Assembly: GCF_001447785.1 (NCBI RefSeq)
Contig: NW_015172553.1
Coordinates: 601,737 to 665,736 of the forward strand
From: Gekko japonicus
Taxonomy: Eukaryota
Reading direction: 5' to 3'
DNA: 64,000 nucleotides
Under the pieces are notes generated by a model, which was not told the DNA's origin, did not search any database, and saw only the letters and a list, made by a program, of their open reading frames with translations. Position 1 is the stretch's first letter. The number at the start of each line of letters is the position of its first letter. Shown here piece by piece: positions 27,478 through 59,409 of this stretch. A program made the translations under genes and the position numbers.

Positions 27478-27522
27478 ATGGCAACTGACGGCAAGGAGGT
27501 TCTTCTGATGGAGGCACCGCCT
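27478..27522 (+). CDS. SFTPC: SFTPC copy A exon 1
   Basis: [15 protein letters not shown], donor gtaagt; TATA box at 27411. Confidence 0.9.
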
Positions 27523-30500
27523 GTAAGTCTCTCCTTCTGGAGTAATTTCTTTCTTCTCATGGCAAGTGCGGCTTCCAAGCCATAGCAATGGCAACTACAG
27601 CTGGCCCTTGGAATTTTAGTCCCTATGATCCAAAACTCCAATGAGCACAATCCAGAAGGAAGTTCCCCTTCGTGTATCTTGCTGAAATGTATAGGAGTTG
27701 CACAAGACAGTGCCAGTTAATTCCACTGGGACTCATAAAGTAGAACGTTCCACTGGGTTGTGCCCCCTGAGTCAGATCAGTCCGACTCCCATTCATCTGC
27801 CTTCTATAGCTCTCTTCATCTGCCACCCAAGCTTCCTCTCAGTAGGTTCACCTGTCAATTGGAAGAGGACAAACAAACAGCAACAAAGACTGTGTGAATT
27901 GATCCCAACCTTTCACAATTCCCCCTAAAGCATACGTTTTGGCTCTCATTGCTTTCCCCTGTGGCCTAGGTGGTGAAACCGTGTTTGGGTTGTGCCACTT
28001 CAGTCCGATCCCAACCTTTCATAATTCCCCCTAAAGCATATGTTTTGGCTCTCATTACTTTCCCCTGTGGCCTAGGTGGTAAAACCGTGTTTGGGTTGTG
28101 CCACTTCAGTCTGCAGGGAGGGCTCTCATGACTAAATAGTCGATGTAAAAAAATAGCCCCTCGGCATAGAAATCTAGCAAGAAGGGATCCAGCATAGGCT
28201 TTGCCCTTACATTCTTTTTCTATGTGCAGGGCGTTTGTTGTTTTTCAATGGAGTTTTTAATCGTCACTTCAAGCCAATTGTTTTACCTCAGGCGAAATGA
28301 ACTACATTCATTATTATAACTGTGCTTCCATTTCTTTCTTTCTTTCTTTCTTTCTGCTGCTGCAGGATTATACTGCATCCCCCCGACTCCCTGGGCTCCC
28401 TTGCAAGAAGCTCTTGATTGTTGTGGTTGTGGTGGTAGTGATTGTTTTAGTTGTTCTGGGCTTCCTTCTGATGGGCCTGCATATAACAGAGAAGCACACT
28501 GAAACGGTAAGTGCAGTAAAATGGCCGCAGGTACAGGAATCTCAGGGGTGGATTGTGACAGTAAAACCCTCCAAGGCTAAGCAGCTCCTGTGCTGCTGGC
28601 AGGAACTGCTTGGCTCAGACCCAACCCACAACAATACCAGCCCTGTCCACTAGTTACAGTGAATGCATGTACAATCCATGTAAGGCGTACACTCGATTTT
28701 TCTTTATACTTGTGTTGAATAATTCTCATGTTATATTCAACACATGTACAGTTGAATGTGTGACTAAAAAGCACCTTTTATCCAGGTACTGATCGCCGGT
28801 TTCATTTGTAAAGAATGTGCATTGGCTCTTTTGTATGGACAGGTGTATGCACATACATGCAGGCTGTATGTGTATCCATTGTAACACGTGAACAGGACTC
28901 GTGACAACTGGAGTAAAAGTAAGTGGGTACCGATTGCCAGCTAGAAATTGTATCAAAGTGGTACCTCCCATATTCTGCACTGAGCCCACACACACGCAAG
29001 AGAGAGAGAGGGCTCTTTAGCTTGGAGAAACAACGACTGAGGGGTGACATGATCGAGGTTTATAAGATTATGCATGGGATAGAGCAGGTAGAGAAAGAGG
29101 TACTTTTCTCCCTTTCTCACAGTACAAGAACTCATGGGCACTCCATGAAATTGCTGAGGGGTCGGGTTAGAACGGATAAAAGGAAGTACTTCTTCACCCA
29201 AAGAGTGATTAACACATGGAATTCACTGCCACAGGAAGTGGTGGCGGCTACAAGCATGGACGGCTTCAAAAGGGAATTAGATAAGCATATGGAGCAGAGG
29301 TCCATCAGTGGCTATTAGCCACAAGGTATAGATAGGGACTCTGGGGCAAGTGATGCTCTGTCTTCTTGGTGCTTGGGGGGGTCAACAGTGGGAGGGCTTC
29401 TAATGTCCTGGCCCCACTGGTGGACCTCCTGATGGCACTGGTATTTCTGGCCACTGTGTGATTCAGAGTGTTGGACTGGATGGGCCTTTGGCCTGATCCA
29501 ACATTGGTATCTCTTATGTTCTTATGTTAAGTACCAGCCAGAAATGTAAATTACTTTCATCGCTGGTGACCATGGTAAAAGTGGACCCATGCCTCTGTCT
29601 GCGCCTTTGCTGGCATCAGAAGGGGAGGAGCCAACAGGCAAGCTTGTGTGTGTGATTGGCCTGAGCAGCCTTGCAGTGCTGCCAATGCCAGTGTGGCTGA
29701 GCTCAGCTGAATGTTGACCACCAGCGAGGCATCCAGGGCAACAAACTCACTGGGAAATTTTCCAGTAAGTTACAGACCAGTTCTTAGGAGTGTGCAGTTG
29801 GTTACTTAATACTTCCTGTTGGTAGAGTGCCTATGCAGCAGTCAGGACACTGAACTGATTAAAAGTAAAGAAAGCTTTATTTATGAACTAACAAACTGGA
29901 CAGGAATCAGAAGAGATAAGCCTTGCTACCTCAGAGAAAGTTCTTGACTATTCTAGCAGAAAACCCCAACAGTAGCACCTGCAGACAGGAGAAGCCCCTT
30001 TATAAAGGTATGCCCTCTAACATTCCTGTCTAGCTAGAGCTTGCTGCCCTCTGCAGGATTTTTTTGTACAAAAGACATGGTTATATTGGAATATATACTC
30101 TCAACAGTGCCCCATAACTAATCATTCGTATGTGTAGTGCATGTTCTATACCCTCTCCCCTAGAAACTGACATTTGAATGAGTTAAAGAAAGCAAAGGGT
30201 GCTGCTGTTGAAATGCACCATTCTTGCTACTCAGGCTGACTGTTCTTTCGTTTCTCCCTCAAATACTCAACCTCCCCCCCCCCCCCCCAGCCATATTCAG
30301 TGACTAAATGTGCCAAACTGTGTATGCAAGGGTGTAGACTTTCCAATTTCCCGGGGGGGGCTGGGGCTCGACCAGAGGCATTGCTTTGCTAGGAGTAAGG
30401 GTGGCTCCCGGGGGAGGCTGAGTACCTTCCTGAAAATTTCGGCGGGGGCTCACGCCCCGCCGCCCCCACGAAGATTACGCCTATGGGTTGCAGGCACAGT

Positions 30501-33500
30501 GCCACTGAGGAGCTGCAGTAGTTTTATTTGGCCTGGCTCACTGCCCTTATAAAGCCTCAGAGCAAGCTGATACTCAGCTTTTCTTTCACCACCTTCAAAA
30601 GCATGCTTAGTTAATCCATATCAATAAGAAAATGTCCCATAAGGCAACATTGTTTTGATCTTCATCAATGTATTCTTTGATCACTGATGTCAGTTTTGTG
30701 CCCCAGTCAATGGCTGGCATCTCTATCAATGCCTCCAGTCTTGCAGCCACTGAAAATGTCAGATGTGCAAACGATGCAAGTTTTTAAGACTCAAGGAAAT
30801 TATGCTAGTCAGGACTCACACTGTTTCTTTCCACCTAATTTACTGGGAATAGCTCTGGCTTTTCTTCTTCCCACTGGAAATACAGCCAAAGTGCTCTGGC
30901 AAAGAGCTCCTTGTCTCCTATTATCTTAGGCTGAATCGTGTAAAAGCAACAAAACATCGGCTGTGAAAGAAAGGAGAAACTCTCATCCCTGCACTGTTTA
31001 GACAAACAATTGCTATACACTCTTTTTAGTTTCCCAGTTGCACTAGTTGTAGGAAGTTCCAAGGGGTCTCCTTCCTAGGAGAGAATACAGGTGCGTTATC
31101 AGTGTTCCCTCTAAGCTGAGTTAGTGTGAGCTAGCTCACAGTTTTTTAGCCTCCAGCTCACCCATTTTTGCCTTAGCTCAGGAAGGATGGCTCCAGAGCA
31201 AACTAATTTATGCAGCAGCCAAACTGCTCGCTCACAACTTTAACGCCAGTGGCTCGCAAGGTAGAATTTTTGCTCACAAGACTCCACAGCTTAGAGGGAG
31301 CATTGGTTATGATGCTGTTGCAATATCTGTTTTGTTACAAATATGCAGAGGAGTGGACAGGAACCCTGACAGAAAGTTAAGCAAACAGCATTCCTTTACA
31401 GTGTGTTCCCCCCCCCCCCACCGACCGTTGCTGCCCAGCCAACGGGTGAAACTCAAACTTCTGGTTGCTCTGCAGGCTACTCCAACTAGAACTGATGGGA
31501 TGTGCTCAAAAGCTAGTAATAACCTATCATTAAAAGCCACTAAAGGTTATTTAAAAGCAACTCCTTTAGCTATTAGCTTTCCAAAAGATGGCTATCTTCT
31601 CATTTCCCTTGATCTCTTCTTCTGATCCATGCAAATTTCTTCTCCTATGCTCTTCCTTGCTCCTTTGTACCATCTAGGTCCTGCAAATGACCATTCAAGG
31701 TCTGGATGGCGACAGTTCTCTGCAGCACCTTTCCATGACCCGGAAAGAGAAGCTGGCAACATTCCATGTCCGTGTGGATGGCAACACTTCTGCCACTGTG
31801 GTGTATGACTACAGTAATGTAAGGTTTTGCTTAATGTGTTTGGCAACTTCGAAAGGGAAATCCCTGAGGGGCAAGACTGAGCATCACACAACTGCTGTTT
31901 CACATTTTCAGATGCACATTTTCATGGCCTGCAAGCCCTTATTAGAAGCATAGATCCTCCCCTGTTCTCATTTGGAGGAAATTTCTCACCTTTAAGGCTG
32001 CAGAAATTATTCTTATTAAGTTATATGGCACTTTCAAATTTTCAAAATATTTTTAGCTGGAGTAAGGTAATAGAGGGTAAGGTAATAGAGAAGGAAGTGG
32101 CAACGCAGCTTCAGACTTTCTTGGAGGATGCTAAGATCTTGGACCCCTTCCAGTCCACCTTTCACCCTGCCCATGGGACAGAAATGATATTGGTCACCCT
32201 GGTGGGTGATCTCTGGAGACATCTGGATTGAGGCAGATCGGTGCTGCTGATACTTCTTGATCTGTCAGCAGCGTTCGATATGGTTGACCATGATGTGTTA
32301 GCCCACTCCCTCACCAACATGGGGATATGGAGGCTTGCCTTGCAGTGGCTGACCTCCTTTCTCCGAGGTCGGGGACAGAGGGTGGCATTTGGGGGGAGTT
32401 ATCCCAGCAACACCCACCAGAATGTGGTGTGCCGCAGGGAGCAATTCTCTCCCCTATGCTATTCAGTATCTATATGCACCCCCTCACCCAGATTATCTGG
32501 AGATAGGGGCTTTGTTGTCACCAGTATGCGGATGACACCCAGCTCTATCTACTGATGGACGGCTGCCCAGACACGGCCCCAGGAGATCTGGACAAGATGT
32601 TACAGGCTGTGGCTGGATGGCTGCGACAGAGCTGACTGAAGTTAAATCCATCCAAGATGGAGGTCCTGTACCTGAGTTGCGGGGGATTGGCACAGGGAAT
32701 CAGGCTCCCAGCCTTCAACGGGGCTCCACTGGTCCTGATGTCAAGGGTGAAGAGCCTGGGGGTGCTCCTGGACACCTTCCTTTCTATGGAGGCCCAGGTC
32801 ACCAACATTGCCAGGTCTGCCTTTTTGCATCTGAGACAGATCAGGCAGTTGGCCTCATATCTCACCCCCCCCCGCAAGACTTGACTATTGTGACCTATGC
32901 AATGGTCACTTCTAGACTGGATGATTGTAACTCTCTCTATGTGGGGCTGCCCTTGACTCTGCTCCAGAAGTTGCAGCTACTGCAGAACACGGCAGCACCG
33001 GTGTTGATGGCAACTCCTGTGCAGGCTCACATCCACCCAGTGCTGCGTGAATTGCACTGGCTGTCTATTAAATTCGAGATCCGTTTCAAGGTGCTGGTAC
33101 TTCCCTTTAAAGCCCTATAAGGCCAGGCGCCAGCATACCTTCAAGACCTCCCCTCCCCATATGAGCCCCGTAGAGCACTAAGATCTACTAATCAGGCCTG
33201 TCACCAGGATTTTGTAATTCAGGGGGCCTTTAAATAAGTCAGGGGGCACTGACATCACAAAATAACAGTAAAAATTTAAGAACTCACTTTTGCATCGTTC
33301 ACACTCTGCTTGCCTACATGGGGAAGCAAGCCACGTTTGGGGACAGGGCGGTGGTGGGGAGTCCTCCAGGTGGCCCAGAGAATCGGGAGTCCTCCAGGTG
33401 GCCCAAAGAGTCAGGGGGCCTGGGTGCTGGATGGAAGTCAGGGGGCCAGGCCCCAAAATGCCCCACTGTAGCTACAAGCCGGCTACTAATCAACATCTTT

Positions 33501-36010
33501 TGTTAGTCCGACTTGCCTCAACCAGGGCCAGGGCCTTTTCAGTCCTGGCCCCCATCTGGTGCAATGAGCTCCCATATGAGATCAGGGCCCTGCAGGATTT
33601 ATTACAATTCTGCAGGGCCTGTAAGACGGAGCTCTTCCACCAGGCTTTTGGTTGAGGCAGCGAACATCCCCTCTCTTTGGCTGGCCTCCCATCAGCGGCC
33701 TGGATCCTTAAATTTTCAATGTCATCTTAACCGCTAAGATATCTGATGTCTGCTAGAGTTTACATGGTACTCAGGACTTGTGTTATGTTATTTTATACTG
33801 TTGTTTTAATGTGGTTTTAACTGTATTGTATTTTATATTGCTGGAACCTGCCCTGAACCCGCTTGCGGGGAGGGCAGGATATAAATCCAAATAAATTAAA
33901 AAATACATCTCTGCAGCAATTCATTTACAGGCAGGGAAATCTGGGTGATTACTTATTCCCATTTTGTAAATGAGAAACTGAAGCTGAGAGATTCCTGACT
34001 TTCCTAGAGTCACTGTGACTGAGCTAGGATTGGGGATGGGCATGAACCAGGAAAATGTGGTTCGGTTCGTGGCACACCTGGTTTACAAACCACAAATCAT
34101 CACAAACTTTTAGGAGCCAGACAAACCGGATCAGTTCATGGTTTGTGATGGGGTAGAACAGGGGGGCANNNNNNNNNNNNNNNNNNNNNNNNNNNNNNNN
34201 NNNNNNNNNNNNNNNNNNNNNNNNNNNNNNNNNNNNNNNNNNNNNNNNNNNNNNNNNNNNNNNNNNNNNNNNNNNNNNNNNNNNNNNNNNNNNNNNNNNN
34301 NNNNNNNNNNNNNNNNNNNNNNNNNNNNNNNNNNNNNNNNNNNNNNNNGTGCAAGATATCAAAGATCCCTACAGGATCTCCCCTGGATGCTCCTCTAAAT
34401 GCCCTCTAAGTTCTACCCCCCCCCCGGTTGCTTTGAAGTTTGGTAAACATTTAGATTGAGCTGAGACAGTCTGTCTGGAAACGTAGCCACAAATCGCCAT
34501 AAACCGCCATGAACTGCTTGAAAGTTTGTGCCAGTTAACCTGCCACGAACTTCGGTTTGCAAACCACGAACCAGCCAAAATTCATCATGAACTTTCATTT
34601 GTGAGCCAGTTCGTACCCATCCCTAGCTAGGATTTGAGTACGGTCGTAATGCCAAGTACAAGAATTGTTGATTTAAGTGGAGAGGGATCAGCAAAGGAGC
34701 TGATGTGAAACTGCAAGACGTGAAAGTTCCACAGAGCTGACATCTTTGCATTCTTTGGTTTTCTACATGCATGTAAGGGGGAGTAACATGGGAAGAAGCT
34801 GCATGAATCTAGATGCTTGGGCAGGAAGGCGCGAACAGAATTGTGTGTGAGAAGGTGATTTCATGGAGACTGTGAATGAGGTTTTATAGCGTACCCATGA
34901 ATTCTGTATTTGCACAGCTGCTGATTGGGTACAGATTCTGGCCAGGACAATCCTGCTGCATCACCAAGATGAACAAGGAGAACATTCAAAGCTTGGATGC
35001 TATCGTTAAAGCTTTCCAACAAGTTCAGGTGAGGTCAACCAGGAGGCATCACCTTTGCGATTGCAGGGAGCATCCATTGAGAAACAGATGTCTCCATGAT
35101 AAGGGAACACTTGAATGGAACCCCCAAACATTTTGTGCCCCAAGGCTCAATAAGGTCAGGGTCTAAGGATCTCTGTTCTACACTAAAGAAACAAACCAAG
35201 GAGAAAGTTAGACTAGAGATTTCTCCTTAGCATCTATTTTCTATGTGCACAGAATTCTTAACGGGGGGGGGGGGCACACACATCCAACTTGCAGTCTGAA
35301 GGGATACACAGTGCATTCCTAAAGAGAATTACACCCTTCCAAGACCATTGACTTAAAATGAACTCAGGCAAGGGTACCTCTGTTTAGGATTGCATTGACA
35401 GCTTCAGAACCATTAGCCCACATGATCTATTTGTGTGGACTAACTCTACTGAAAGTAACCAGATGGGGAAGTTCATAAGCAGGGCACCACGGCAACAGCC
35501 AATCCTCTGTCCTTAATCCTCAGCATCTGGAGGCAGTGGATTTACTGCTGAAACATGAACAATTGGGCTTCTGGGCATCATGACACTACTATCTAGTTCT
35601 TTTTGATTATCCTGAAGAGGAGCTAGAGGAAGGGGCAGGGCGTGCCGAGTTTACGAGAGCCCCCCACAGGATGACAGAGGTTTCCACTTTAATATTCTCT
35701 AACAGATGGCTTATCCTTCTCTCCTCAAAACCAGCCCAAACGAAAACATCCGATATCTCTTCTGAAGGGTACAGAGCCATGAGAACAATTCTGGCTCTGT
35801 ATAATAGATAGAGATAGCAACCGGGTGCTGCCAGGTCATGTTCTGAGAATGCAACCTTTTCCTTTTCTCCTTTAGTCCAAGCCTCTTACACCCCGTCACC
35901 AGCAGACTGAGGAGGAGGAAAAAGAGCTCCCTGTCGTCCTGACCGATCGCTCTCTCCTGAGCACCACAGTTAACATCCTCTGCAGCAGCGTTCCCATCTA
36001 CTGGGCTTAG
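27478..36010 (+). CDS. SFTPC: Pulmonary surfactant protein C precursor, copy A; 5 coding exons, 190 aa
   Basis: Exons 27478-27522, 28366-28506, 31678-31818, 34918-35028, 35876-36010, all phase 0, [19 protein letters not shown]|DY resembles mammalian MDVGSKEVLMESPPDY; poly-Val helix ending LLMGLH; BRICHOS motifs [23 protein letters not shown]. Confidence 0.93.
27901..28111. repeat. 106-bp tandem duplication in copy A intron 1
   Basis: gatcccaacctttca...gccacttcagtc at 27901 and 28007, a few substitutions. Confidence 0.95.
28366..28506 (+). CDS. SFTPC: SFTPC copy A exon 2 (mature SP-C helix)
   Basis: [47 protein letters not shown]; long pyrimidine tract + cag, donor gtaagt. Confidence 0.95.
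29008..29528 (+). mobile_element. CR1 LINE 3' fragment in copy A intron 2
   Basis: [23 protein letters not shown]...[18 protein letters not shown], tail (tcttatgt)2. Confidence 0.93.
31100..31306. mobile_element. hAT-type MITE
   Basis: TIR cagtgttccctctaagctg / cagcttagagggagcattg. Confidence 0.8.
31678..31818 (+). CDS. SFTPC: SFTPC copy A exon 3 (linker + BRICHOS start)
   Basis: [47 protein letters not shown]; tag/gtaagg. Confidence 0.93.
32067..33900 (+). mobile_element. 5'-truncated, frameshifted L2-clade LINE (RT domain to 3' end) in copy A intron 3
   Basis: [48 protein letters not shown] motifs; A-rich tail. Confidence 0.92.
33193..33482. mobile_element. MITE nested in the L2
   Basis: 8-bp TSD ctactaat at 33185 and 33483, imperfect TIRs. 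Confidence 0.7.
34031..34625. mobile_element. hAT-type non-autonomous element spanning the gap
   Basis: TIR tggggatgggca / tacccatcccta, 8-bp TSD gctaggat. Confidence 0.8.
34169..34348. other. Assembly gap (180 N)
   Basis: Run of n. Confidence 1.
34918..35028 (+). CDS. SFTPC: SFTPC copy A exon 4 (BRICHOS)
   Basis: 111 nt, [37 protein letters not shown]; cag/gtgagg. Confidence 0.93.
35876..36010 (+). CDS. SFTPC: SFTPC copy A exon 5 (BRICHOS end, stop)
   Basis: [44 protein letters not shown]; donor-like gtgggt at 36018, as expected before a non-coding last exon. Confidence 0.92.
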   Translation, partial: SKPLTPRHQQTEEEEKELPVVLTDRSLLSTTVNILCSSVPIYWA

Positions 36011-36731: not shown

Positions 36732-36762
36732 AATAAATAAATAAATAAATAAATAAATAAAT
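36732..36762. repeat. (AAAT)n tail of an L2-like 3' end
   Basis: Follows gggagggcgggatacaaat. Confidence 0.85.
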
Positions 36763-43046: not shown

Positions 43047-45095
43047 GGAACGTAAGAATGTAAGAAGAGCCCTGCTGGATTAGACCAATGGTCCATCCAG
43101 TCCAGCATCCTGTCTCACACAGTGGCCAAGCAGTTCCTCTGGAGGACTAACAACAGGGCATAGAGGCCAAGGTCTGGGTTGGAAAATACCTGGAGACTTT
43201 GGGGGAGGATCCAGGAGATGGTGGGGTTTGGGGAGGGGAGGGACCTCAGCACGGTACAATGCCATAGAGTCCACCCTTCAAAGCAGCTATTTTCTCCAGG
43301 GGAGCTGATCTCCGTCAGCTGGAGATCAGTTGTAAAAGCGGAAGATCTCCAGCCCCACCTGGAGGCTGGCAACCCTAGGCTAAGGCCTTCCCCTGATGTT
43401 GCCTCCTGGGTCTGGGATTCAGAGGCTTAATGCCTCTGAATGTGGAGGTTCCCCTCAGTCACCATGGTTAGTAGCCATTAATACACATCCTCCATGAATC
43501 TATCTAATCCCCTTTTAAAGATATTTATTCCTGTGGCCATCACTGCATCCTCTGGCAGCGAATTCCACATTTTAATCACTCTCATGGTAAAGTAGTATTT
43601 TGTCTATCCTGAAACTACTGCTCATCAGTGTCATTGGATGCCATCAAGTTCTAGTATTTTGGAAGAGGGAGAAAATTTTCCTTTTGTCAATTTTCTCCAT
43701 TCCATGCATAATTTTATAAACTTATATCATGTCCCCTGAGCCTGCTTTGGTGGGGTAGGGCAGGGTATAGATCGGAAAAATAAATAAATAAAATAAATTA
43801 AATGTCTCTTTTTTAAATTGAAAAATCCCAGACTCCTCAGCCTTTCCTCATAGGGAAAGGGCTCCAACTCCCTAATTATCTTGATTGCCCTCCTCTGTAC
43901 TTTTTCCAGCTCTGCAATGTCCTTTTGTAGAAACGGGGTCCAGAACTGTATTCCAAATGAGGTCACACCATAAATCTATGCAGGGGCATTACAATATCAG
44001 CCGATTTATTCTCAATCACTTTCCTAATAATCCCTAACATAGAGTTTGCCCTTTTCATCGCTGTAGCACACTGAGTTGACACTTTCTTTGAGCTATTCAC
44101 TACAACCCCAAGATCTTTTCCCCTCTCAGTCTAAGAAAGTCCAGACCACATTAGCCTATACTTGAAGTTGGGAATGGGATTTTTTGTGCATCACTTTATC
44201 AACATTGAACTTCATTTGCCACATTGTTACCCACTTACCCAGTTTGTGGAGGTCTTCTTGGAGCTCTTTACAGTCAGCCTTGGTTTTCACCATCTGGAAT
44301 AATTTTGTATCATCTGCAAACTTGGCCACTACACTACTACCCCCAGTTCCAGATCACTGATGAATAAATTAAATAGTATTGGCCCCAATATCAATCCTTG
44401 TGGGACCCCACTGCTTACTTCCCTCCATTGTGAGAGCAGTCTATTGATTCCTACTCTTTGCTTCCTACTCATTGAACAAGTTTTTAATCTATAAGAGAAC
44501 CCATCCTCTTATCCCATGACTGCTAAGTTTACCCAGGAGTCTTCAGTGAGGTACCGTGTCAAAAGCCTTTTGAAAGTTCAGGTATATAATGCCTACTGGG
44601 CCACTGTTGTCTACATGCTTTTTCACTTTCTCAAAGAACTCCAAAAGGTTGGTAAGGCAGGACTTCCATTTGCAGAAGCCATGCTGATTTCCCCTTCAGC
44701 AAGCTTTGTCCCTCTACATACCTAGCAATTCTATCTTTGATTACAGTTTCTACTAATTTGCCTGGGATAGACGTTGGGCTGACTGCCCTGTAATTTCCTG
44801 GTTCCCCTCTGGATCCTTTTTTAAAAATTGGTGTCACATTTGCTACTCTCCTTTCTTCTGGTACAGCAGCTGAATTTAGTGACAGGTTACATATATGGGT
44901 TAGTAGATCAATGATCTCACATCTGAGTTCCTTAAGAACTCTGGGTGTATGCCATCAGGACCTGAAGACTTATCAATATTAATTTTCCCAGTCAGTCTAG
45001 AATTTCATCTCTGGTCACCTCAGTTTGGCTCAGTTCTTCAGACTCCCTTCCTGGAAATATGGGCTGTGGCATGGGTACATGCACCACACTTTCCA
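43047..45095 (-). mobile_element. Degraded CR1 LINE with nested MITE
   Basis: TPIFKKGSRGEPGNYRAVSPTSIPGKLVE and QFWTPFLQKDIAELEKVQRRAIKIIREL; CR1 3' UTR and tail near 43050. Confidence 0.92.
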
Positions 45096-46441: not shown

Positions 46442-46640
46442 CTTGAGACTCCACTTAATGCCAAGGCACCGGGCCACCTCCTTGGCTCTTAAGAGCTTAA
46501 GAGGCACTGAATCAAGTTCTCAGATTATATAGATAAAAAAGCAAAAGTGAAAATCTGGCTCCCAGCCCACCGTCTTCTCAAAAGCTCTTAGCTGTGGGCA
46601 CCCCACCTGTTTTACGACACCTCTAGGCTTCATATATAGG
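46442..46640 (+). promoter_or_regulatory. SFTPC copy B proximal promoter: TATA-like box and NKX2-1-type motifs
   Basis: CATATATAGG 46631-46640; CTTGAG 46442, CACTTA 46452, TCAAG near 46512. Confidence 0.55.
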
Positions 46641-46698
46641 ACACACTCCATCCAGAGTGGGCTGGGAGCAGAAGCAGTGCAGCAGAGTTGGCGGGACA

Positions 46699-46761
46699 AT
46701 GGAGATAAATGAGAAGATGGAAGTTGTCACTAAAGAGGTACTTCTCCAGCTACCACCAGTG
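46699..46761 (+). CDS. SFTPC: SFTPC copy B exon 1
   Basis: [28 protein letters not shown] motif shared with copy A, donor gtgagt at 46762, TATA-like CATATATAG at 46631. Confidence 0.85.
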
Positions 46762-49700
46762 GTGAGTCCCACCTTTATGCCTTTATGGGCACAATGATTT
46801 TCTTTTTAAAAATCCATAAAGGCAAACAGCTGCATGAACCTGCTGTTTCTCCACTTCTTTGCTGCAACTCCAGTGGATTTCAGCACCCATTTTAATAAGT
46901 GTCAAAGCAATTTGAGCAGCAATGACCCATAGAAAATGAAAGCAACCTCCATTAGAGTAAAGGCACAATCCCAACAAGTAAGAGTGAGCTGGCAAGCACC
47001 GTTGTCCCCCTAAAATCACTTGAGTGTGTGAATGTGTCTACACACACACACACACACGTATATCCCATGCCAACCAATACTGTAATGACTCTGCGCAACA
47101 GGTATAGATTTTTCAGTGTTTTTTTTTTAACTATAAGGGGCCTGTGTCACGGAACTCATGCATAGTACCATGCCTTTCAAATGCAAAAATTATGATGTCG
47201 TTTTAAGTGTTGTAAGTCACTCCAAGCCCCCTGGGTGAGAGGTAACTAAAATCTAATAAATATATTTTTAAAGCCAATGTGGCATAGTGGTTAGAGTTTC
47301 AGAGTAGGATCTGTGAGACCCAGGTCCGAATCCCCACTCTGCCATGGAAGCTTGCTGGGTGAATTCAGGTTGGTCACACACTCTCAGCCTGTTATGATTT
47401 TATGATTTTATTCTGTCTAAACTGTAATTTTAACATTGTTCTAATAGTATTATACTAATTGATGTATACTGCCCTAAGCCCGTTTATGGGGAGGGCAGTA
47501 TATAAATCAAATGAATAAATAAATAACTGACCTCGCAGGGTTGTTGTAAGGATAAAATGGAGAAGAGGAGAATGATGTAGGCCAGTTTGGGTTCCCCCTG
47601 GGGAGAAAGGTGGGATATAAATGAAGTAGATAACATAAATAATAAAATAAAGAGTTAATCCTGCCTGTGGCTGGAAGCCATTATGCAAAAAGTTAAAGCT
47701 AGCATTCCCAGATCCTTAATGCTGATTGCAGTTTTGCTGTCTGGGAAACTTACACCTTGGAGTTATGGGATGGTTGTGAATGGTTGTGTGAGTGTATATG
47801 AGTATGGTTGTGGATCACCGAATGATTGCATCTTAATTTCGTTGTACTATGTACAATGACAATAAAGTATATTAGTATTAGTATTAGTATTATTTCCCTT
47901 TGCAAAGTCTGAGAAAAAACATTTTGAAGGTCAAGAAGTGTTGAGACTTCAGATAATGGATGGGACGCCCTGAAGTCCTGCTCGCCACAGCCAGTGAGGG
48001 TGGTGATAGATAATATATTCTATGGTGCTGGTGTTTTCAATATTTTATGGGCACAATTGTTCTGTAATGTCACCTACCCTGAGTGTTTGGAGTGGGATAG
48101 ACAAGAACCCTAGTCTCAACAGATAGGACAAAGCAGTGTATTTCCTGGTATTTTATAGATACAACTTTGTTGTTCAGTCACACAGTCGAGTCCGACTCTT
48201 CGCGACACCATGGACCACATCACACCAGGCTCTCCTGCCTTCTGTTGTGCTCCGGAGTTTATTCAATTTCATGTTCGTTGTCTCGATAACACTGTCTAAC
48301 CATCTCATCCTTTGCTGTCCTCGTCTTCTTTGACCTTCAATCTTTCCCATCATCAGGGTCTTCTCCAGTGAGTGCTCCCTTCTCATTTGGTGGCCAAAGT
48401 ATTTGAGCTTCAGCTTCAGTATCTGGCCTTCAGTGACATGTTTTATAATGCTATTCCAAGGAACACTTTGCATGCTCCTGTGTTACATATTGTTGAAAGC
48501 TCTTTGCCATCTACATGCTATATTAATTTACCCTGCAATAGCCCTATCCTAAATTGGTTTAAGAATCAAGATATGGAGGGTTTTTGGGTTAAATGTATCT
48601 ATTTATTTATTTCATTAAACTTATGAATTGCCCACCCTGCAAGCAGCCTCTGGGCAATTTACAGCCTTATAAAACATTTAAAATACAGACAATATATATA
48701 ATTATAATAAAAGTATACCTGAAAGACATAATTGTCCTACCTACCTCAGCAGCTACAGTATGCTAGCCTCCAGGTGGGACTTGGGAATACCCTGGAATTA
48801 CAGCTCATTTCCAGACTACAGAGAGCAGTTCCCTTGGAGAAAATGGCATTGTACCTCACTGAGGTCCCTGTCCTCCATCCCCAAATTTTCAGGAGTTTCC
48901 CATCCTATATCTGGCAGCCTCCTATATCTGGCAGCCCTAACCTCCCATCCCCCACCAGTGGGGGACCTGGCAACCCTAAGAATAGCTTGCTGCCTGAGTG
49001 TTCATGCACTGACAGATACAGATTTAGAGGTAACATGCATGCGTTTCCCACTCTGAGATTAAATTCTAGACATTTGGTGGGAAGAGCTGAACCATAAAGA
49101 ATGACAATGCTGACAAAATGTTAATAAGGCATCCCCCCCAAATAAAAATAAGGACAGTGAATCACCATGGACAGTGACCAGCAAATGGCATCCATGGTAT
49201 AGAGGAACCATTGGAGCAGTCCTACCATGGTTCCACAACTAGACTGTGTGACATGTTCTCAAATGGGTTATAGTAGCAATGCCATGAATATCTTTTGAAG
49301 GAAGGGAAACAAGAAAGGGAGAAGGGCAAGGACGAGAAAAGTCACATCTCAACCAGAATTAAATATGGCCCCATACTCCAGGGGGAAGGAAGGTGGCATG
49401 GTACAGCCCAATCTCATCAGATCTTGGAAGCTCAGACAGGTCAGTACTTGGATGGGAGATCACCAAGGAAGACTCTGCAGAAGGAGGCCATGGCAAACCA
49501 CCTCTGCTTCTCACGTCCCTTGAAAGCCCCTTGCTGGGGTTGCCATAAGTCAACTGCAACTTGATGTCACTTTACACGCACACCCCTATAATGCAGGCTG
49601 GGTGGTGCAGAGAACAAAAAGGGGAAGTCCTCTGGAGCCATATGGCTAAAAAGTAACATTATTTATAAAGTATTTAAAAATTGGGGTGGATCCAGCCATT

Positions 49701-52700
49701 CTCCAGGTAGCCCCTTCCTCCAACTGAAGTGGCTCTTCCTCCAACGAAAGACACATTTAAGTTGGAGAAAGACTCCTTAGACTGAAGGAGGTTGGGAATA
49801 AAAATTTAAACAAATGAATACATTTTGCCCACTGGAGTGGTGGGATAGGAGAAGGATCCACCCCACTGTGTACAGAGCCAGGGCCTCCTAGCCAGGAAAT
49901 CACCCTACCTTCTGATGTCCCCCTTCCATAGCACCACCACGCCTTGGATCCAGATCTTCTGGGCTGCTGCCCCTGCTGCGATTGCAGTTTTGCTGTCTGG
50001 GAAACTTACACCTTGGAGTTATGGGATGGTTGTGAATGGTTGTGTGAGTGTATATGAGTATGGTTGTGGATCACCGAATGATTGCATCTTAATTTCGTTG
50101 TACTATGTACAATGACAATAAAGTATATTAGTATTAGTATTAGTATTATTTCCCTTTGCAAAGTCTGAGAAAAAACATTTTGAAGGTCAAGAAGTGTTGA
50201 GACTTCAGATAATGGATGGGACGCCCTGAAGTCCTGCTCGCCACAGCCAGTGAGGGTGGTGAGAGATGATATATTCTATGGTGCTGGTGTTTTCAATATT
50301 TTATGGGCACAATTGTTCTGTAATGTCACCTACCCTGAGTGTTTGGAGTGGGATAGACAAGAACCCTAGTCTCAACAGATAGGACAAAGCAGTGTATTTC
50401 CTGGTATTTTATAGATACAACTTTGTTGTTCAGTCACACAGTCGAGTCCGACTCTTCGCGACACCATGGACCACATCACACCAGGCTCTCCTGCCTTCTG
50501 TTGTGCTCCGGAGTTTATTCAATTTCATGTTCGTTGTCTCGATAACACTGTCTAACCATCTCATCCTTTGCTGTCCTCGTCTTCTTTGACCTTCAATCTT
50601 TCCCATCATCAGGGTCTTCTCCAGTGAGTGCTCCCTTCTCATTTGGTGGCCAAAGTATTTGAGCTTCAGCTTCAGTATCTGGCCTTCAGTGACATGTTTT
50701 ATAATGCTATTCCAAGGAACACTTTGCATGCTCCTGTGTTACATATTGTTGAAAGCTCTTTGCCATCTACATGCTATATTAATTTACCCTGCAATAGCCC
50801 TATCCTAAATTGGTTTAAGAATCAAGATATGGAGGGTTTTTGGGTTAAATGTATCTATTTATTTATTTCATTAAACTTATGAATTGCCCACCCTGCAAGC
50901 AGGCTCTGGGCAATTTACAGCCTTATAAAACATTTAAAATACAGACAATATATATAATTATAATAAAAGTATACCTGAAAGACATAATTGTCCTACCTAC
51001 CTCAGCAGCTACAGTATGCTAGCCTCCAGGTGGGACTTGGGAATACCCTGGAATTACAGCTCATTTCCAGACTACAGAGAGCAGTTCCCTTGGAGAAAAT
51101 GGCATTGTACCTCACTGAGGTCCCTGTCCTCCATCCCCAAATTTTCAGGAGTTTCCCATCCTATATCTGGCAGCCCTAACCTCCCATCCCCCACCAGTGG
51201 GGGACCTGGCAACCCTAAGAGCAGCTTGCTGCCTGAGTGTTCATGCACTGACAGATACAGATTTAGAGGTAACATGCATGCGTTTCCCACTCTGAGATTA
51301 AATTCTAGACATTTGGTGGGAAGAGCTGAACCATAAAGAAGGACAATGCTGACAAAAATTTAATGAGGCATCCCCCCCCAAATAAAAATAAGGACAGCAA
51401 ATGGCATCCATGGTATAGAGGAACCATTGGAGCAGTCCTACCATGGTTCCACAACTAGACTGTGTGACATGTTCTCAAATGGGTTATAGTAGCAATGCCA
51501 TGAATATCTTTTGAAGGAAGGGAAACAAGAAAGGGAGAAGGGCAAGGACGAGAAAAGTCACATCTCAACCAGAATTAAATATGGCCCCATACTCCAGGGG
51601 GAAGGAAGGTGGCATGGTACAGCCCAATCTCATCAGATCTTGGAAGCTCAGACAGGTCAGTACTTGGATGGGAGATCACCAAGGAAGACTCTGCAGAAGG
51701 AGGCCATGGCAAACCACCTCTGCTTCTCACGTCCCTTGAAAGCCCCTTGCTGGGGTTGCCATAAGTCAACTGCAACTTGATGTCACTTTACACGCACACC
51801 CCTATAATGCAGGCTGGGTGGTGCAGAGAACAAAAAGGGGAAGTCCTCTGGAGCCATATGGCTAAAAAGTAACATTATTTATAAAGTATTTAAAAATTGG
51901 GGTGGATCCAGCCATTCTCCAGGTAGCCCCTTCCTCCAACTGAAGTGGCTCTTCCTCCAACGAAAGACACATTTAAGTTGGAGAAAGACTCCTTAGACTG
52001 AAGGAGGTTGGGAATAAAAATTTAAACAAATGAATACATTTTGCCCACTGGAGTGGTGGGATAGGAGAAGGATCCACCCCACTGTGTACAGAGCCAGGGC
52101 CTCCTAGCCAGGAAATCACCCTACCTTCTGATGTCCCCCTTTCATAGCACCACCACGCTTTGGATCCAGATCTTCTGGGCTGCTGCCCCTGCTGCGACTG
52201 CTGCTCCCTGCCTGACTGCGGCTCCTGCCCCGGCTGCGGCAGCTGTCCCAATTGCTGCTGCTGCTGCCCGAGCTGCTGCTGCCCCCCCAGCTGCAGCTGC
52301 TGCTGCCGGCTCTGCTGCTGCCTCCCAAGTCTTCTGTGCAAGTTGCCCAAGTTCCCCAGCTGCCCAGTGCACATCAAGAGGCTCTTGATCGTTGTGGTGA
52401 TCGTCGTTCTCATCGTGGTGATCATCGTGGGCGCCCTTCTGATGGGGCTGTTCATAACTCAGACACACACTGAGACGGTGAGTGGAGGGCTAAGTAAGTG
52501 GACATTGGTGAGGAAGGGGGCAATAGATATATGGGAAAGTAACCGGTTTTCACTTAGTGCACTTGGCTCAAAAAAAAAATCCCATTAAGGGGCATTTTTA
52601 CTTTTCCACAGTAGTGCAGTACCAGCACAGCTACTTGCAATGTTTGTCTACTTTTCCACAGGCTGTACAGCATCCTTGAGTTAATGAGACATGGATTTCG

Positions 52701-55700
52701 GAGAAGATTTGAATCACAAGGCGCAAGGGACAACAGCAAACATGCTAGGCGATAGATAAGGGGCACCAAGAAAAAGCTAATATCAGAAGTAAACTCCTAG
52801 GACTTCTCACCAAAACAGTCAACCTGAGTCTGGGGCAACTGTGAGGGCTTCACAGATATAAAAATGTGCTCTGCTCGTAGAAAGCTAGCTATCAAGGGGA
52901 GCAACATAATGATTTTGTACTCCCTGATATGATGATTTTCTTTGTGTAGGAATTTCCTTTGTTGTCTTTTTGGAATGAAGGAACATTTGGTCTTGTAAGC
53001 AACCGCTTGCACTCTGCAGGGGTATAGTCCAGGCACAGCTTGGTATAGAAGCTAGGGCACCAGGACAGGACCTCAGAAGCCCAGGTTCAAATCCCAACTT
53101 TGTCATAAAGTTCACTAAATGACCTTGAACTGCAGGCTAACCAACCTCACAGAGTTGCTGTGAGGATAAAATAGGAGAAAAAAAGCGTGCACACTGCCCT
53201 GAATTCCACGGAGTAAAGGAAGGATAAAAATAGATAGACTTAACTGATACAGGATACAACCAGTTTTCCAATGTCAGAGCTTACCAAATGCATGAAACAA
53301 GAGTGTGCATACAAAACTAAAGTGCCGTTGGAGCATAATAGTAAGCCAAAAAGTCTTCCATTCATATCTCTCCTATACACAGGGCTATTTTTGGGCAGGA
53401 ACGCACAGGAACGGAGTTCCGGCTGGCTCCTGAGTTGGCCACGCCCAGCAGGAACTCATTAGCATAATAGGCCACACCCAATAGCAGAAACTCATTAGGA
53501 TTGGCTGCATTAGGGGTGTGTGGCCTAACATGCAAAGGAGTTCCTGCTACAAAAAAAGCCCTGGGTTTTGACAACAAACAAGGTAAACAGAATAAGAAGG
53601 GAAAGGTGGGTGTGGCTGGATGACCACACTTCTGGTAACATGGGGGTGTGGCCTAATGTGCTAATGAGTGGTGTTGTCAGGGTGTGGCCTAATATGCTAA
53701 TGAGTTCCTGCTGGGCTTTTTCTACAAAAAGAGCCCTGCCTATACACTTATGCAGTAGCCTTTATTGAGCCGCCCACTCTAATTCAGACTCCCACCTACA
53801 ATACTGGGACAATGCTGACCTAACTTACTGGATTGTTGTAAGCAGTGTTCCCTCTAAGCTGAGTTAGTGTGAGCTAGCTCACACTAACTCAGCTTAGAGG
53901 GAACATTGGTTGTAGGGATTACTGAGATGACAAATATATAAGAGCATTCAGAACACTCTACAGCAGAATCTAAATACTATTGGTATTATTAACTACGGCT
54001 ATGGCTAGTCCACAAACTATCTGAGTTTAGGGAGCCGACTCTAACTCTAGCACCATTCCTTTCAGAAATTCAGTACTGCTTACCATCTCAAGATCCGTCT
54101 GCTCCCCAGAGTTGGGACTGGGACCCTTGCAGGCAGGCTGGTGAGAATGGAAATGAAAAGCAAGCATCCTCACCACAAGATCCGCCTGCTCCCCAGAGCT
54201 GGGACTGGGACCCTTGCTGGTAAGAATGGAAATGAAAAGCAAGCATCCTCACCATACTGTATCCTGTTCTCTATTCGTAGGTCTTGCAAATGACCATTGA
54301 AGGGCTGGAGGGGAGACAGTCGCAACTGAATCTGCCCATGGATCAGGAAGAAGTGGCCACTTTCCATGTGAATGATGGAATCAATGACCCAGCCACAGTC
54401 ATTTATTACTTTGGCAAGGTGAGCATGAGAGGCCGCTGGAGAAGAGGCTCTTTGGGAGAGAAGGGCCTTGGTCATTCAGGTTGGATCATGACACAATTGT
54501 CACTTTTACTATACATGGACAACATGCGGCTGCAATCTCACAAATGGTTGCCAGCCGGTTTAGTTCACAGCACCCATTCTCCCTTTCATTGCTTACATGA
54601 TTGCACGGAGCAGAACTGGAACGACATATCCGTCACTACTCAGCATTTGCCAAAATGCCCAGTTTCATCCCTCAAATTATGAATGTGCTCTAATTGAAAA
54701 GTTTTCTATACGAATACAGCAAAATACTTTTTAAAACAGATTTTTAGTGTTGTTGGCATCTCTTCGTTATTTTCACAAGCATCAGATATGAAATTCTTGC
54801 ATCCGGTGACTGTGTCAGCTATCCAACAAGGGAACTGAACTGAAATATCATTGGATCCTAAACACAAATGTTAAATTAGGTAGTATTATAGAGAACATCT
54901 AGAGAATTAAAATCAGGACTGGCAGCTCAAAAGTAGGCAGGGAAAGCTGGTGGTTCTGGTACGAATTCCAGCAGTGGCCTTCCCTGACTCATAACTTGTT
55001 CACACTGGGGGTCACTAGTTATGTGAGGCCAGCTGGGACCCTACTGCCTCCTTGGTTTAGCAGAGCATCCTCCGGCCATCTACGGTGGTGGTTCTACACC
55101 GTCAGCCAAGCTAAACCAGGAGTTCCTTCTGCTTGCTGGCTATTCTGGCAGTACTGGGTGTGAAGTGCCTGAACTCTGCTGCCAGGGGCCATGCTTCCAG
55201 ACCCCTGGCGCTTTAAAAACACAGAGGAGCCTTGGGTAACACATTTTTTTCACTCTACCATGAAGGAAATCTACAGCATGACCCAGCCTGCAGTTACTGC
55301 TAGATTTCACACAAAATTCAAAAACTGAGCCACCCTCCTTTTAATGCATTTCTAAGTCATCTATAGCCCTACCTGATTATTGGTATCTGAGAAGTACATA
55401 TTAATGAAAGCATGCCCTCTATCTGCAACAGCTACTGATTGGTTACAAATCCTGGAACAGAAAGGCCTGCTTCATCACCAGAATGGACGAGGGAAACATC
55501 CAAGGTCTAGATACTATCCTTAAAAAATTCCAGGTAAGAGCAGAAACCTGATACAGGGAAATATTAATATTAATATTATTATGGGACTGCAGGGAAATAT
55601 TATGAGATGGTGGTACTTATGGGAAAACCCTGGTGGATTTGCAAATGGGGAGAGGATGCCATCTACTCATGAGGAGGCTGATTGCTAGACAAGCACAGGT

Positions 55701-55903
55701 CATGGCCTCAGTGACTCTTCTTATGCAGAGTGGTAGATTGGTTCCAATTCTATTGTTTTCTTTTATAGACCAACCTATCCGTCACACCTCCCATGCACAC
55801 CTCCCAGGAAGAGGAGACGTTCCTTCTGTCCCAAGCTGATCACTCCATCTTGGGTGCTACAATTAACATCCTTTGCAGCCATGTCCCCATTTTCTGGGTT
55901 TAA
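46699..55903 (+). CDS. SFTPC: Surfactant protein C-like paralogue, copy B, with Cys-rich N-terminal propeptide; 5 coding exons, 255 aa (249 aa from the second ATG at 46717)
   Basis: Exons 46699-46761, 52148-52477, 54281-54418, 55432-55533, 55769-55903, all phase 0, GT-AG, no stops. [30 protein letters not shown] closely matches mature mammalian SP-C; BRICHOS exons align with copy A. Confidence 0.9.
47272..47625 (+). mobile_element. tRNA-derived Squam3-like SINE interrupted by an L2 3' end
   Basis: A/B boxes (tggcatagtggttaga, ggtccgaatccc), CORE-like gggttgttgtaaggataaaatgg. Confidence 0.7.
48167..48437 (-). mobile_element. RTE-BovB 3' fragment (duplicated at 50423-50693)
   Basis: [44 protein letters not shown]. 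Confidence 0.92.
49392..49580 (+). mobile_element. 5S-derived SINE (duplicated at 51608-51796)
   Basis: atctcatcagatcttggaagct...gtacttggatgggaga 5S-like head. Confidence 0.7.
49932..49981 (+). pseudogene. Duplicated, truncated 5' part of copy B exon 2 (pseudo-exon)
   Basis: Same acceptor and first 50 nt ([17 protein letters not shown]) as 52148-52197, then runs into intronic sequence with a stop at 50055-50057. Confidence 0.85.
50423..50693 (-). mobile_element. RTE-BovB 3' fragment (second copy, inside the duplication)
   Basis: Same ORF as 48174-48473. Confidence 0.92.
52148..52477 (+). CDS. SFTPC: SFTPC copy B exon 2 (Cys string + SP-C helix)
   Basis: 330 nt, [19 protein letters not shown]...[42 protein letters not shown]; acceptor cccctttcatag, donor gtgagt. 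Confidence 0.88.
53380..53738. mobile_element. hAT-type MITE
   Basis: TIR cagggct / agccctg, 8-bp TSD cctataca. Confidence 0.85.
53843..53908. mobile_element. 66-bp palindromic mini-MITE
   Basis: Same left end as the 31100 element, TSD gttgtaag/gttgtagg. Confidence 0.85.
54089..54254. repeat. About 87-bp tandem duplication just upstream of copy B exon 3
   Basis: caagatccg(t/c)ctgctccccagag...caagcatcctcacca at 54089 and 54176. Confidence 0.9.
54281..54418 (+). CDS. SFTPC: SFTPC copy B exon 3
   Basis: [46 protein letters not shown]; tag/gtgagc. Confidence 0.92.
55432..55533 (+). CDS. SFTPC: SFTPC copy B exon 4
   Basis: [34 protein letters not shown]; cag/gtaaga. Confidence 0.92.
55769..55903 (+). 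CDS. SFTPC: SFTPC copy B exon 5 (stop)
   Basis: [44 protein letters not shown]; donor gtgagt at 55908, 4 nt after the stop. Confidence 0.92.
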   Translation, partial: TNLSVTPPMHTSQEEETFLLSQADHSILGATINILCSHVPIFWV

Positions 55904-59342: not shown

Positions 59343-59409
59343 TGCTGCACCCACCATGCCATGTCAGCATTCCAAATGCACCTGCAGGCTCAAAAAGGTT
59401 GGGGACCCC

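Follow-up and report, generated by a model that had tools for sequence, protein, structure and literature searches.

A probable ancient tandem pair of SFTPC genes in Gekko japonicus, with one member of a cysteine-string type

The window, a 64,000-nt stretch of DNA from Gekko japonicus, probably holds a functional tandem pair of SFTPC genes that lies beside an LGI-type gene and descends from an old duplication, with the second gene being a Cys-string variant. The first gene (copy A, 27478-36010) encodes 190 aa and the second (copy B, 46699-55903) encodes 255 aa; both were rebuilt from the window sequence, have no internal stops, and match the SP_C-Propep and BRICHOS families, in agreement with a first-pass annotation that had proposed two intact SFTPC genes in tandem. 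Copy A would represent the conventional sauropsid SFTPC: its N-terminal part carries a PPDY sorting motif, a single Cys lies next to the membrane, and a poly-Val helix is followed by a BRICHOS domain that retains the Asp. Copy B would represent an SFTPC-like type in which a mammal-like helix (CPVHIKRLL...VGALLMGL) and the BRICHOS fold have been kept. The features of the region are as follows.

8027..21594, minus strand: LGI-type gene, head to head with copy A (Pfam EPTP, six matches, 7.4e-66; LRRCT, 1.1e-05); last exon at 8027-8986, LRRCT exon at approximately 10308-10580, first-exon-like ORF at 21259-21594
27411..27417, plus strand: predicted TATA-like box of copy A (TATAAAT), from the sequence, 67 nt upstream of the ATG
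27478..27522, plus strand: copy A exon 1, donor GTAAGT
28366..28506, plus strand: copy A exon 2, encoding DY..., the poly-Val helix and HITEKHTET; Pfam SP_C-Propep
31678..31818, plus strand: copy A exon 3, linker and start of BRICHOS, ending in VVYDYSN
34169..34348, no strand: assembly gap of 180 N within intron 3 of copy A, between exons 3 and 4
34918..35028, plus strand: copy A exon 4, Pfam BRICHOS (1.8e-07)
35876..36010, plus strand: copy A exon 5, Pfam BRICHOS (1.1e-03), stop TAG at 36008-36010
46633..46639, plus strand: predicted TATA-like box of copy B (TATATAG), from the sequence, 66 nt upstream of the ATG
46699..46761, plus strand: copy B exon 1, donor GTGAGT with a weaker donor 3 nt upstream; equals the N-terminus of the database protein P0005
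47724..49981 and 49982..52197, plus strand: two tandem units in intron 1 of copy B, 97.6% identical
52148..52477, plus strand: copy B exon 2, long form, Pfam SP_C-Propep; conserved in frame across orthologues
54281..54418, plus strand: copy B exon 3, ending in VIYYFGK, with Tyr at the BRICHOS Asp position
55432..55533, plus strand: copy B exon 4, Pfam BRICHOS (3.4e-05)
55769..55903, plus strand: copy B exon 5, Pfam BRICHOS (2.5e-03), stop TAA at 55901-55903
57126..57173, plus strand: probable start of copy B exon 6 (3′ untranslated), acceptor ...ctgctgcag, placed from the tail of P0005

Both copies showed the same gene structure, with five phase-0 coding exons whose lengths are all multiples of 3 and with GT-AG introns throughout. 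A GT donor follows each stop codon closely (GTGGGT at 36018, 7 nt past the TAG of copy A; GTGAGT at 55908, 4 nt past the TAA of copy B). The exon number and phase, the separate TATA boxes, and the donors just past the stops had all been described in the first-pass annotation and were found again in the rebuilt models. The LGI-type neighbor of copy A is a candidate for LGI3, the gene that adjoins SFTPC in mammals; BMP1 was not seen within the 64,000-nt window, and a search of the LGI exons against NCBIfam, a prokaryote library, was uninformative.

Identity counts, alignments, and trees were based on the joined models of copies A and B, and database searches were run exon by exon. SP_C-Propep (PF08999) matched exon 2 of copy A (1.5e-12, 47.5 bits) and of copy B (1.9e-12, 47.2 bits) well above the cut-off of 25. 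BRICHOS (PF04089) matched exons 4 and 5 of copy A (31.7 and 19.6 bits) and of copy B (24.4 and 18.4 bits), with some scores below the 25-bit whole-protein cut-off because the queries were single exons; full-length orthologues carry PF04089. A phmmer search of copy A exon 3 against PDB gave no match. The motifs were those first described: PPDY and VVYDY, with the BRICHOS Asp, in copy A, and PPV/HHH (no PPxY), CPVHIKRLL...VGALLMGL, and VIYYF in copy B. Each copy has a juxtamembrane Cys and basic residues ahead of a long helix rich in Val, Ile, and Leu, and the BRICHOS Cys pair is present in both.

Mammalian SFTPC resembles both copies in having five coding exons, all phase 0, and a stop codon close to the end of the fifth, and in the order of its parts: an N-terminal propeptide, a Cys next to the membrane, a poly-Val helix, a linker, and a BRICHOS domain (PF08999 and PF04089; 2YAD). 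It too has an LGI-type neighbor. It shares PPDY with copy A, whereas CPVH(I/L)KRLL and VGALLMGL are shared with copy B. Compared with the mammalian protein, copy A has a shortened peptide N-terminus with a single Cys, and copy B has a Cys/Pro string of approximately 65 residues, no PPxY, and, as in other geckos, Tyr at the BRICHOS Asp. The number of genes also differs: mammals showed one SFTPC gene in these searches, and the Gekko window contains two.

The two proteins were 49.5% identical over 186 aligned residues. Local blastn between the two gene regions (leaving out 53140-53176) found similarity only in exons 2, 3, and 5 and in two short repeat matches; the introns of the two copies are therefore unrelated, and the diverged proteins and dissimilar introns of the earlier description both stand. 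Between copies A and B, pN was 0.30 and pS was 0.65, giving a dN/dS of approximately 0.25, which for this paralogue pair is read with dS near saturation. Models that read through the A part and then the B part were found in Phrynocephalus, Columba, Chelonia, and Geospiza, showing that the tandem order is conserved.

That the second copy was created by the assembly, for example from haplotypes left uncollapsed or a false join across the N gap, has a negligible probability. The gap within copy A and the nearly identical tandem repeat within copy B would fit such an origin, but the copies are only half identical, their introns are unrelated, and separate orthologues of the two occur in many genomes. 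Moreover, the gap is intronic, and the flanking exons match orthologues without indels. The joined model of copy A aligned over its full length with four gecko orthologues and was free of indels at the junction of exons 3 and 4 (VVYDYSN/LLIGYR); no coding residues of copy A are therefore hidden in the gap. The artefact was rejected on the separate orthologue clades, the unrelated introns, and the indel-free exons around the gap.

It is also very improbable that either copy is an unexpressed or decaying relic in Gekko. Copy B lacks both PPxY and the BRICHOS Asp, and a recent tandem duplication of 2.2 kb has altered its intron 1: each unit ends in the exon 2 acceptor and the first 50 nt of exon 2, and a decoy acceptor is therefore present at approximately 49931. 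Against decay, none of the 10 coding exons is disrupted, all splice sites are canonical, and the two copies are equally conserved with respect to Paroedura (88.9% identity for copy A and 89.0% for copy B). The Asp-to-Tyr replacement is common to three other gecko genera with intact genes, and the BRICHOS fold of a gecko B-type protein was predicted with confidence. The pseudogene reading was rejected on the intact exons and the equal conservation.

The folded protein was P0017 of Paroedura picta, the database protein closest to copy B. Its BRICHOS domain had a pLDDT of 83-93 and 2YAD as the best match (TM 0.74-0.84), and its Cys string was predicted to be unstructured (pLDDT < 50).

Orthologues of copy A were found in geckos, lacertids, skinks, snakes, turtles, alligator, and birds, and those of copy B were found in 11 squamate genera, 5 turtle genera, Crocodylus, and birds including Calidris, Zosterops, Buteo, and Anser. 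Apparent genomic read-throughs of primate or human origin among the matches (e.g., P0008 and P0128) were left out. SFTPC family trees with both copies included, a check that the first-pass annotation had proposed, gave well-supported, separate A and B clades, each comprising squamates, turtles, and archosaurs (A clade, 88-91% bootstrap; B clade, 97-99%, with 97/94 and 99/97 in two trees). Given orthologues of both copies in squamates, turtles, crocodilians, and birds, the duplication predates crown sauropsids, and the earlier reading of an old duplication with both ORFs kept agrees with the two clades and with the Paroedura identities. The duplication would thus be older than the last common ancestor of these four groups, and purifying selection would have acted on both genes since. 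That both genes are real and intact and form a pair of this age is very likely.

A protein search with the whole of copy B exon 2 returned only genome-annotation proteins already found, and no transcript-derived ones. Logan-derived bird proteins in the B cluster continue into the intron and are therefore genomic, not spliced.

Full-length trees recovered a sauropsid clade of A plus B with mammals outside (95/92 and 99/97). A duplication older than amniotes, after which mammals would have lost one copy and one gecko copy would be the strict orthologue of mammalian SFTPC, is accordingly placed in conflict with these trees, and no Cys-string mammalian protein was present among the 218 family matches. 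The A plus B clade may, however, be inflated by gene conversion in exons 4 and 5, which is evident in turtles and birds; the tree of exons 1 to 3, the N-terminal half that is free of obvious conversion, joined mammals with A, if weakly (70/13). The AU test rejected neither mammal plus A (P = 0.086) nor mammal plus B (P = 0.067), as anticipated by the first-pass statement that the true orthologue could not be decided from the window. The mammal-like features are themselves divided, with copy B keeping CPVH...VGALLMGL and copy A keeping a mammal-like N-terminus. On balance, we consider the pre-amniote duplication rather unlikely.

The B type is defined by a conserved Cys/Pro-rich string in exon 2, as judged from the aligned sequences. 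In copy B, 52148-52342 encodes the string, with 26 of the 27 N-terminal Cys, and 52343-52477 encodes the helix and HTET. In the squamate, turtle, crocodile, and bird orthologues of copy B, the string is conserved and in frame, and all differences in its length between species keep the frame into the helix. The N-terminal Cys count ranged from 8 to 35 in the other B-type proteins. The B-type layout places the string between (H/D)(H/Y)xALDP and CCLPxLLCxLPK, followed by CPVHIKRLL, and copy B conforms to it. Pfam found no DnaJ domain in copy B exon 2 or in the string alone, and nothing in the string itself. The string was absent from the claims of the first-pass annotation.

The claims of that annotation did include complementary losses in the two copies. 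The motifs are as it described, but the losses in copy B are not paralogue-wide. PPxY is absent from all squamate B-type proteins and kept in the B proteins of Emydura and Chelonoidis. The BRICHOS Asp, present in 36 of 42 aligned family members, is replaced only in the B proteins of geckos (Tyr in copy B, Paroedura, and Sphaerodactylus) and skinks (Asn). In these alignments, therefore, the loss of PPxY in squamates and that of the BRICHOS Asp in geckos and skinks are seen to be lineage-specific.

Copy B is already present in RefSeq as "SFTPC-like," with P0005 (162 aa) as the Gekko japonicus model. P0005 is 100% identical to exon 1, the inner part of exon 2, exon 3, and exon 4 of copy B. It uses an inner acceptor at 52342/52343, thereby omitting the Cys string, and skips exon 5; its odd C-terminal tail is encoded by 57126-57173. 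The current Gekko japonicus model of copy B is wrong at both ends. The long form of exon 2 is the one favored by sequence conservation, by the strength of its acceptor, and by the model from Paroedura. Were the true product the short form, with the Cys stretch intronic or confined to an alternative isoform, the direct joining of PPV to the sequence past the inner acceptor in P0005 would be correct, and the DNA of the stretch is indeed repeat-like (degenerate periods of 9, 18, and 39 nt with 71-78% matches). This is nevertheless improbable. The acceptor of the long exon is strong, with CATAG following a stretch rich in pyrimidines, and its TAG puts a stop in the frame upstream; the acceptor at the inner site, AAG, is weaker. 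Between Gekko and Paroedura the string shows 89% conservation, and more than 20 species keep its reading frame, all indels being of whole codons. P0005 also errs at its 3′ end.

Database entries named "surfactant protein C-like" in RefSeq and UniProt, which are automatic predictions, include the orthologues of Gekko copy B (Paroedura picta P0017, Tiliqua scincoides P0001, Emydura P0019, and Calidris P0137). Copy B and P0017 were 89% identical, had the same layout (HALDP...CCP...CCLPxLLCxLPK...CPVHIKRLL), and fell in the same clade (97-99%). Copy B is thus known in databases, and we found no paper devoted to it; a literature search for a sauropsid SFTPC paralogue returned nothing beyond Lewis et al. 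(2018; PMC6191699). Lewis, Dorantes and Hanken (2018) reported an amphibian SFTPC-like gene beside SFTPC, which they proposed to be neofunctionalised; "SFTPC-like" was described as salamander-specific, and loss in amniotes was raised only as a possibility. Like copy B, the amphibian gene is a second SP-C-related gene; unlike copy B, the Ambystoma protein has no Cys string. Membership of the gecko copies in the amphibian SFTPC-like group was rejected: the SFTPC-like genes of Ambystoma, frog, and lungfish were split from amphibian SFTPC together with all amniote SFTPC, including A and B (100/99).

In copy B, a string of approximately 65 residues would have been gained just ahead of the helix, bringing the N-terminal Cys to 27. 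In mammals, proSP-C spans the membrane with type II topology, and SP-C cysteines are known to be S-acylated. With the same topology in copy B and the basic HIKR flank before the helix, the string should face the cytosol. Disulfides are unlikely there and S-acylation is the fate of SP-C cysteines; copy B would therefore most likely be multiply acylated. The mammalian PPxY motif binds Nedd4-2, and membrane sorting of copy B would no longer depend on PPxY and Nedd4-2; in geckos, the Asp-to-Tyr replacement would also change its BRICHOS chaperone. As a whole, this mechanism of acylation and sorting, which is reasoned from mammalian SP-C biology, is offered tentatively. Sub- or neo-functionalisation of the pair can reasonably be inferred.

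A functional analogy is offered by the cysteine-string protein (DNAJC5/CSP-alpha), in which a cytosolic run of Cys carries multiple palmitates and tethers the protein to secretory vesicles. Both proteins have a dense Cys run next to the membrane, predicted to be cytosolic in copy B. The likeness goes no further: copy B has no J domain and no sequence relationship to DNAJC5, and its acylation is predicted.

SP-C is generally regarded as a lung-specific gene present in one copy. Models of surfactant function and of SFTPC-linked lung fibrosis are built around three of its elements: the palmitoylated helix, the PPxY sorting signal, and the BRICHOS chaperone. It is conceivable, although somewhat doubtful, that all reptiles and birds have a second, as yet undescribed SP-C with a multiply S-acylated cytosolic string of 20-35 Cys, a protein that is differently sorted or far more heavily lipidated. 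If so, a Cys-string SP-C could account for ways in which sauropsid surfactant differs from that of mammals, or could act outside the alveoli or the lung, and in geckos the B paralogue would have gone further by dropping both PPxY and the nearly invariant BRICHOS Asp. The sauropsid pair corrects the picture in the literature of "SFTPC-like" as salamander-specific. A second gene that all major sauropsid lineages have kept for at least some 280 million years, in which acylatable cysteines are multiplied approximately tenfold and PPxY or the BRICHOS Asp is dispensed with in some lineages, would be a natural experiment on helix acylation, PPxY, and BRICHOS.

Two intact SP-C genes lay in tandem on the + strand, each encoding the membrane helix and a BRICHOS domain. 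Stop-to-stop translations of the first locus were compared with the second locus, which gave four similar exon pairs, and the full models were then read from the sequence.

Coding exons of copies A and B (window position, strand, description)
27478-27522, +, copy A exon 1, starting at the ATG (5' limit of the finding)
28366-28506, +, copy A exon 2, Pfam SP-C propeptide/helix match
31678-31818, +, copy A exon 3, sequence reading
34918-35028, +, copy A exon 4, Pfam BRICHOS match
35876-36010, +, copy A exon 5, Pfam BRICHOS match
46699-46761, +, copy B exon 1, sequence reading
52148-52477, +, copy B exon 2, Pfam SP-C propeptide/helix match
54281-54418, +, copy B exon 3, sequence reading
55432-55533, +, copy B exon 4, Pfam BRICHOS match
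55769-55903, +, copy B exon 5, Pfam BRICHOS match, ending at the stop (3' limit of the finding)

All 10 exons had lengths that were multiples of three, the introns were GT-AG throughout, and there were no internal stops; the predicted proteins were 190 aa (copy A) and 255 aa (copy B). A TATA-like box was located 67 nt upstream of the ATG in copy A and 66 nt upstream in copy B, and a GT donor followed the stop by 4-7 nt in both. The rebuilt models agree with the first-pass annotation, which had given each copy five phase-0 exons, its own TATA box and a post-stop donor. A run of 180 N (34169-34348) fell within intron 3 of copy A, between exons of matching orientation and phase. The joined copy A could be aligned over its full length to four gecko orthologues, and the exon 3/exon 4 junction was free of indels; thus, its coding sequence is complete despite the gap. 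Four AATAAA signals at 8-nt spacing (36732-36761) were present approximately 720 nt past the copy A stop, and neither AATAAA nor ATTAAA was found within 1.6 kb of the copy B stop.

P0005, the 162-aa RefSeq model 'pulmonary surfactant-associated protein C-like [Gekko japonicus]', was retrieved by a word search that used the helix-encoding portion of copy B exon 2. It was 100% identical to copy B exon 1, inner exon 2, exon 3 and exon 4, which identifies the window as DNA of G. japonicus or of a closely allied species. This model uses an inner AAG acceptor (52342/52343, exon start 52343) instead of the long exon 2, and therefore does not include the Cys/Pro-rich stretch of approximately 65 residues ahead of the helix (the Cys string). 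It also joins exon 4 directly to an exon at 57126, bypassing exon 5, and so lacks the end of BRICHOS. The segment that encodes its tail (57126-57173) lies behind a good acceptor and is most likely a downstream untranslated exon of copy B, the partner of the post-stop donor; the last 16 residues of P0005 are probably a frame read of this 3' untranslated exon.

Copies A and B shared 49.5% identity over 186 aligned residues. Synonymous differences between aligned codons were near saturation (pS 0.65, pN 0.30; rough dN/dS 0.25). Nucleotide similarity was limited to exons 2, 3 and 5 and two short repeat matches, the introns being unrelated. Copy A carried PPDY, a shortened single-Cys mature N-terminus and VVYDY; copy B carried PPV at the exon 1/exon 2 junction, CPVHIKRLL...VGALLMGL and VIYYF. 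The motifs that the first-pass annotation listed were correct. The sole strong nonexonic similarity between the loci was that of 31100-31140 (41 nt, copy A intron 2, just 5' of exon 3) to 53843-53908 (copy B intron 2), at 98-100%; it matched in both orientations and is a short palindromic repeat element. Retrotransposon-like (LINE-type) ORF fragments, judged by eye, were present in copy A introns 2 and 3 (28923-29318 and 32241-33120), and similar fragments were seen by eye in the ORF translations of intergenic 43727-44837 (minus strand).

Intron 1 of copy B contained a tandem duplication (47724-49981 vs. 49982-52197), the units being 97.6% identical across approximately 2.24 kb, three gaps included. 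Both units terminate in the exon-2 acceptor and the opening 50 nt of that exon, and thus an intact decoy acceptor (ccatag followed by CACCACCACGCC) lies at approximately 49931. The units differ by 2.4%, which argues against an assembly artefact and for a genuine duplication of fairly recent date. On the minus strand, an LGI-type gene (8027-21594; six EPTP repeats, LRRCT) lay head to head with copy A, which fits the expected arrangement, LGI3 beside SFTPC. Within 56000-64000, nothing was recognised as an exon of BMP1.

The distribution of orthologues was established by a profile search and an exhaustive representative search, with cluster names added. A-type proteins ('SFTPC', approximately 185-200 aa) were found in geckos, other lizards, snakes, turtles, alligator and birds. 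B-type proteins ('SFTPC-like', approximately 217-280 aa) came from eleven genera of squamates and five of turtles, from Crocodylus porosus, and from several birds (Calidris, Zosterops, Buteo and an Anser cluster). In Phrynocephalus, Columba, Chelonia and Geospiza, read-through models begin with an A part and continue into a B part, which shows that order and strand of the two genes in these four genomes are as in the window.

Lungfish proteins, together with SFTPC and SFTPC-like proteins of amphibians, served as outgroups in maximum-likelihood trees. The trees recovered separate A (bootstrap 88-91%) and B (97-99%) clades, each with squamates, turtles and archosaurs, so the duplication dates back at least to crown sauropsids (approximately 280 million years), and the old divergence first proposed from the sequence holds. 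Sauropsid A and B together formed a clade (95-99% support) with mammals as sister. The AU test rejected neither mammals with B (P = 0.067) nor mammals with A (P = 0.086), and mammals weakly joined A in the exon 1-3 tree; the duplication may thus be older than the divergence of sauropsids from mammals. The first-pass view that neither copy can be singled out as the true orthologue stands. In the exon 4-5 tree, turtle A nested among turtle B sequences and bird B among bird A sequences. Between A and B of one species, identity in exon 4 was 89% in Emydura (P0100/P0019), 73% in Columba guinea (P0015), 71% in Podarcis (P0114/P0003) and 51% in Gekko, and the raised likeness in turtles, pigeon and Podarcis relative to geckos extended partly to exon 5. 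Both the nesting and the high identity suggest that gene conversion has affected the 3' half in turtles and birds, and support for the sauropsid A+B clade could be inflated as a result. On present evidence, the most fitting term for A and B is co-orthologues of mammalian SFTPC.

The trait that defines copy B is the Cys string, found in every B-type protein and in none of the mammalian matches. B-type exon 2 starts with (H/D)(H/Y)xALDP, followed by the string and then CCLPxLLCxLPK...CPVHIKRLL. The string contained 8-35 cysteines across species (27 in copy B) and varied in length by whole codons, the frame into the helix being kept in every case. In P0141 (Phrynosoma) and P0143 (Crotalus horridus), B-type exon 2 was annotated in an alternative reading frame of the GCT/TGC-rich stretch, one rich in Ala and Val, which may be a misprediction or a true frameshift. 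The 'complementary features' of the first-pass annotation do exist in this genome, but in part they are changes specific to geckos or squamates, superimposed on a pair that is older. PPxY was lost in all squamate B-types examined but retained in Emydura (PPDY) and Chelonoidis (PPHY). The BRICHOS Asp, present in 36 of 42 aligned members, was replaced in gecko B (Tyr, four taxa), skink B (Asn) and one salamander SFTPC. The shortened single-Cys N-terminus was common to squamate A-types, with other variants in turtle and archosaur A-types.

Both genes were intact in many species over four major lineages, and the Gekko and Paroedura proteins were 88.9% identical for A and, counting the Cys string, 89.0% for B, which bears out the claim that both reading frames were kept. 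The AlphaFold model of P0017 (Paroedura picta B-type) was confident for helix and BRICHOS, with 2YAD (human proSP-C BRICHOS) as best structural match (TM 0.74-0.84). Together with the paralogue dN/dS, these data are consistent with selection on both copies. Of the words sampled from 52000-56500, 20-33% occurred in four small same-organism runs; that these are RNA runs is a guess.

The only literature found on an SFTPC paralogue was Lewis et al. 2018 (PMC6191699), most subscription journals being outside coverage; within that coverage, nothing relevant on SFTPC paralogues or duplication in reptiles or other sauropsids turned up. That SFTPC-like gene is described as apparently restricted to salamanders, with possible amniote loss mentioned. 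Sauropsid B-type is unrelated to this gene, which in our trees belongs to a separate lineage with frog and lungfish proteins, split from SFTPC proper with 100/99 support. The members of this lineage were P0135 (Ambystoma), P0153 (Discoglossus), P0157 (Mixophyes), P0150 (Spea) and P0152/P0154 (Protopterus). Because of the frog and lungfish members, the amphibian paralogue looks older and wider in distribution than published.

By analogy with mammalian SP-C, copy A would act as a conventional proSP-C, with PPxY-dependent sorting, one acylated Cys, a BRICHOS chaperone and helix-peptide processing. Mammalian proSP-C has type II topology, and SP-C cysteines are S-acylated on the cytosolic side, where disulfides are unlikely. 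The HIKR basic flank and type II topology would place the Cys string of copy B in the cytosol. In the P0017 model the string had pLDDT < 50 and no predicted fold, and no Pfam domain was found in it. A role in metal binding or cross-linking, of the kind seen in Cys-rich proteins of the epidermis, is possible; given the cytosolic placement, low pLDDT and lack of a Pfam domain, the string is most likely a multiply acylated, membrane-hugging N-terminal segment, functionally comparable, by inference, to the cysteine string of CSP-alpha. Such an acylated string could substitute for PPxY-dependent sorting or give a more heavily lipidated product. The pair is sauropsid-wide and already in automatic annotation, and is not peculiar to this genome.
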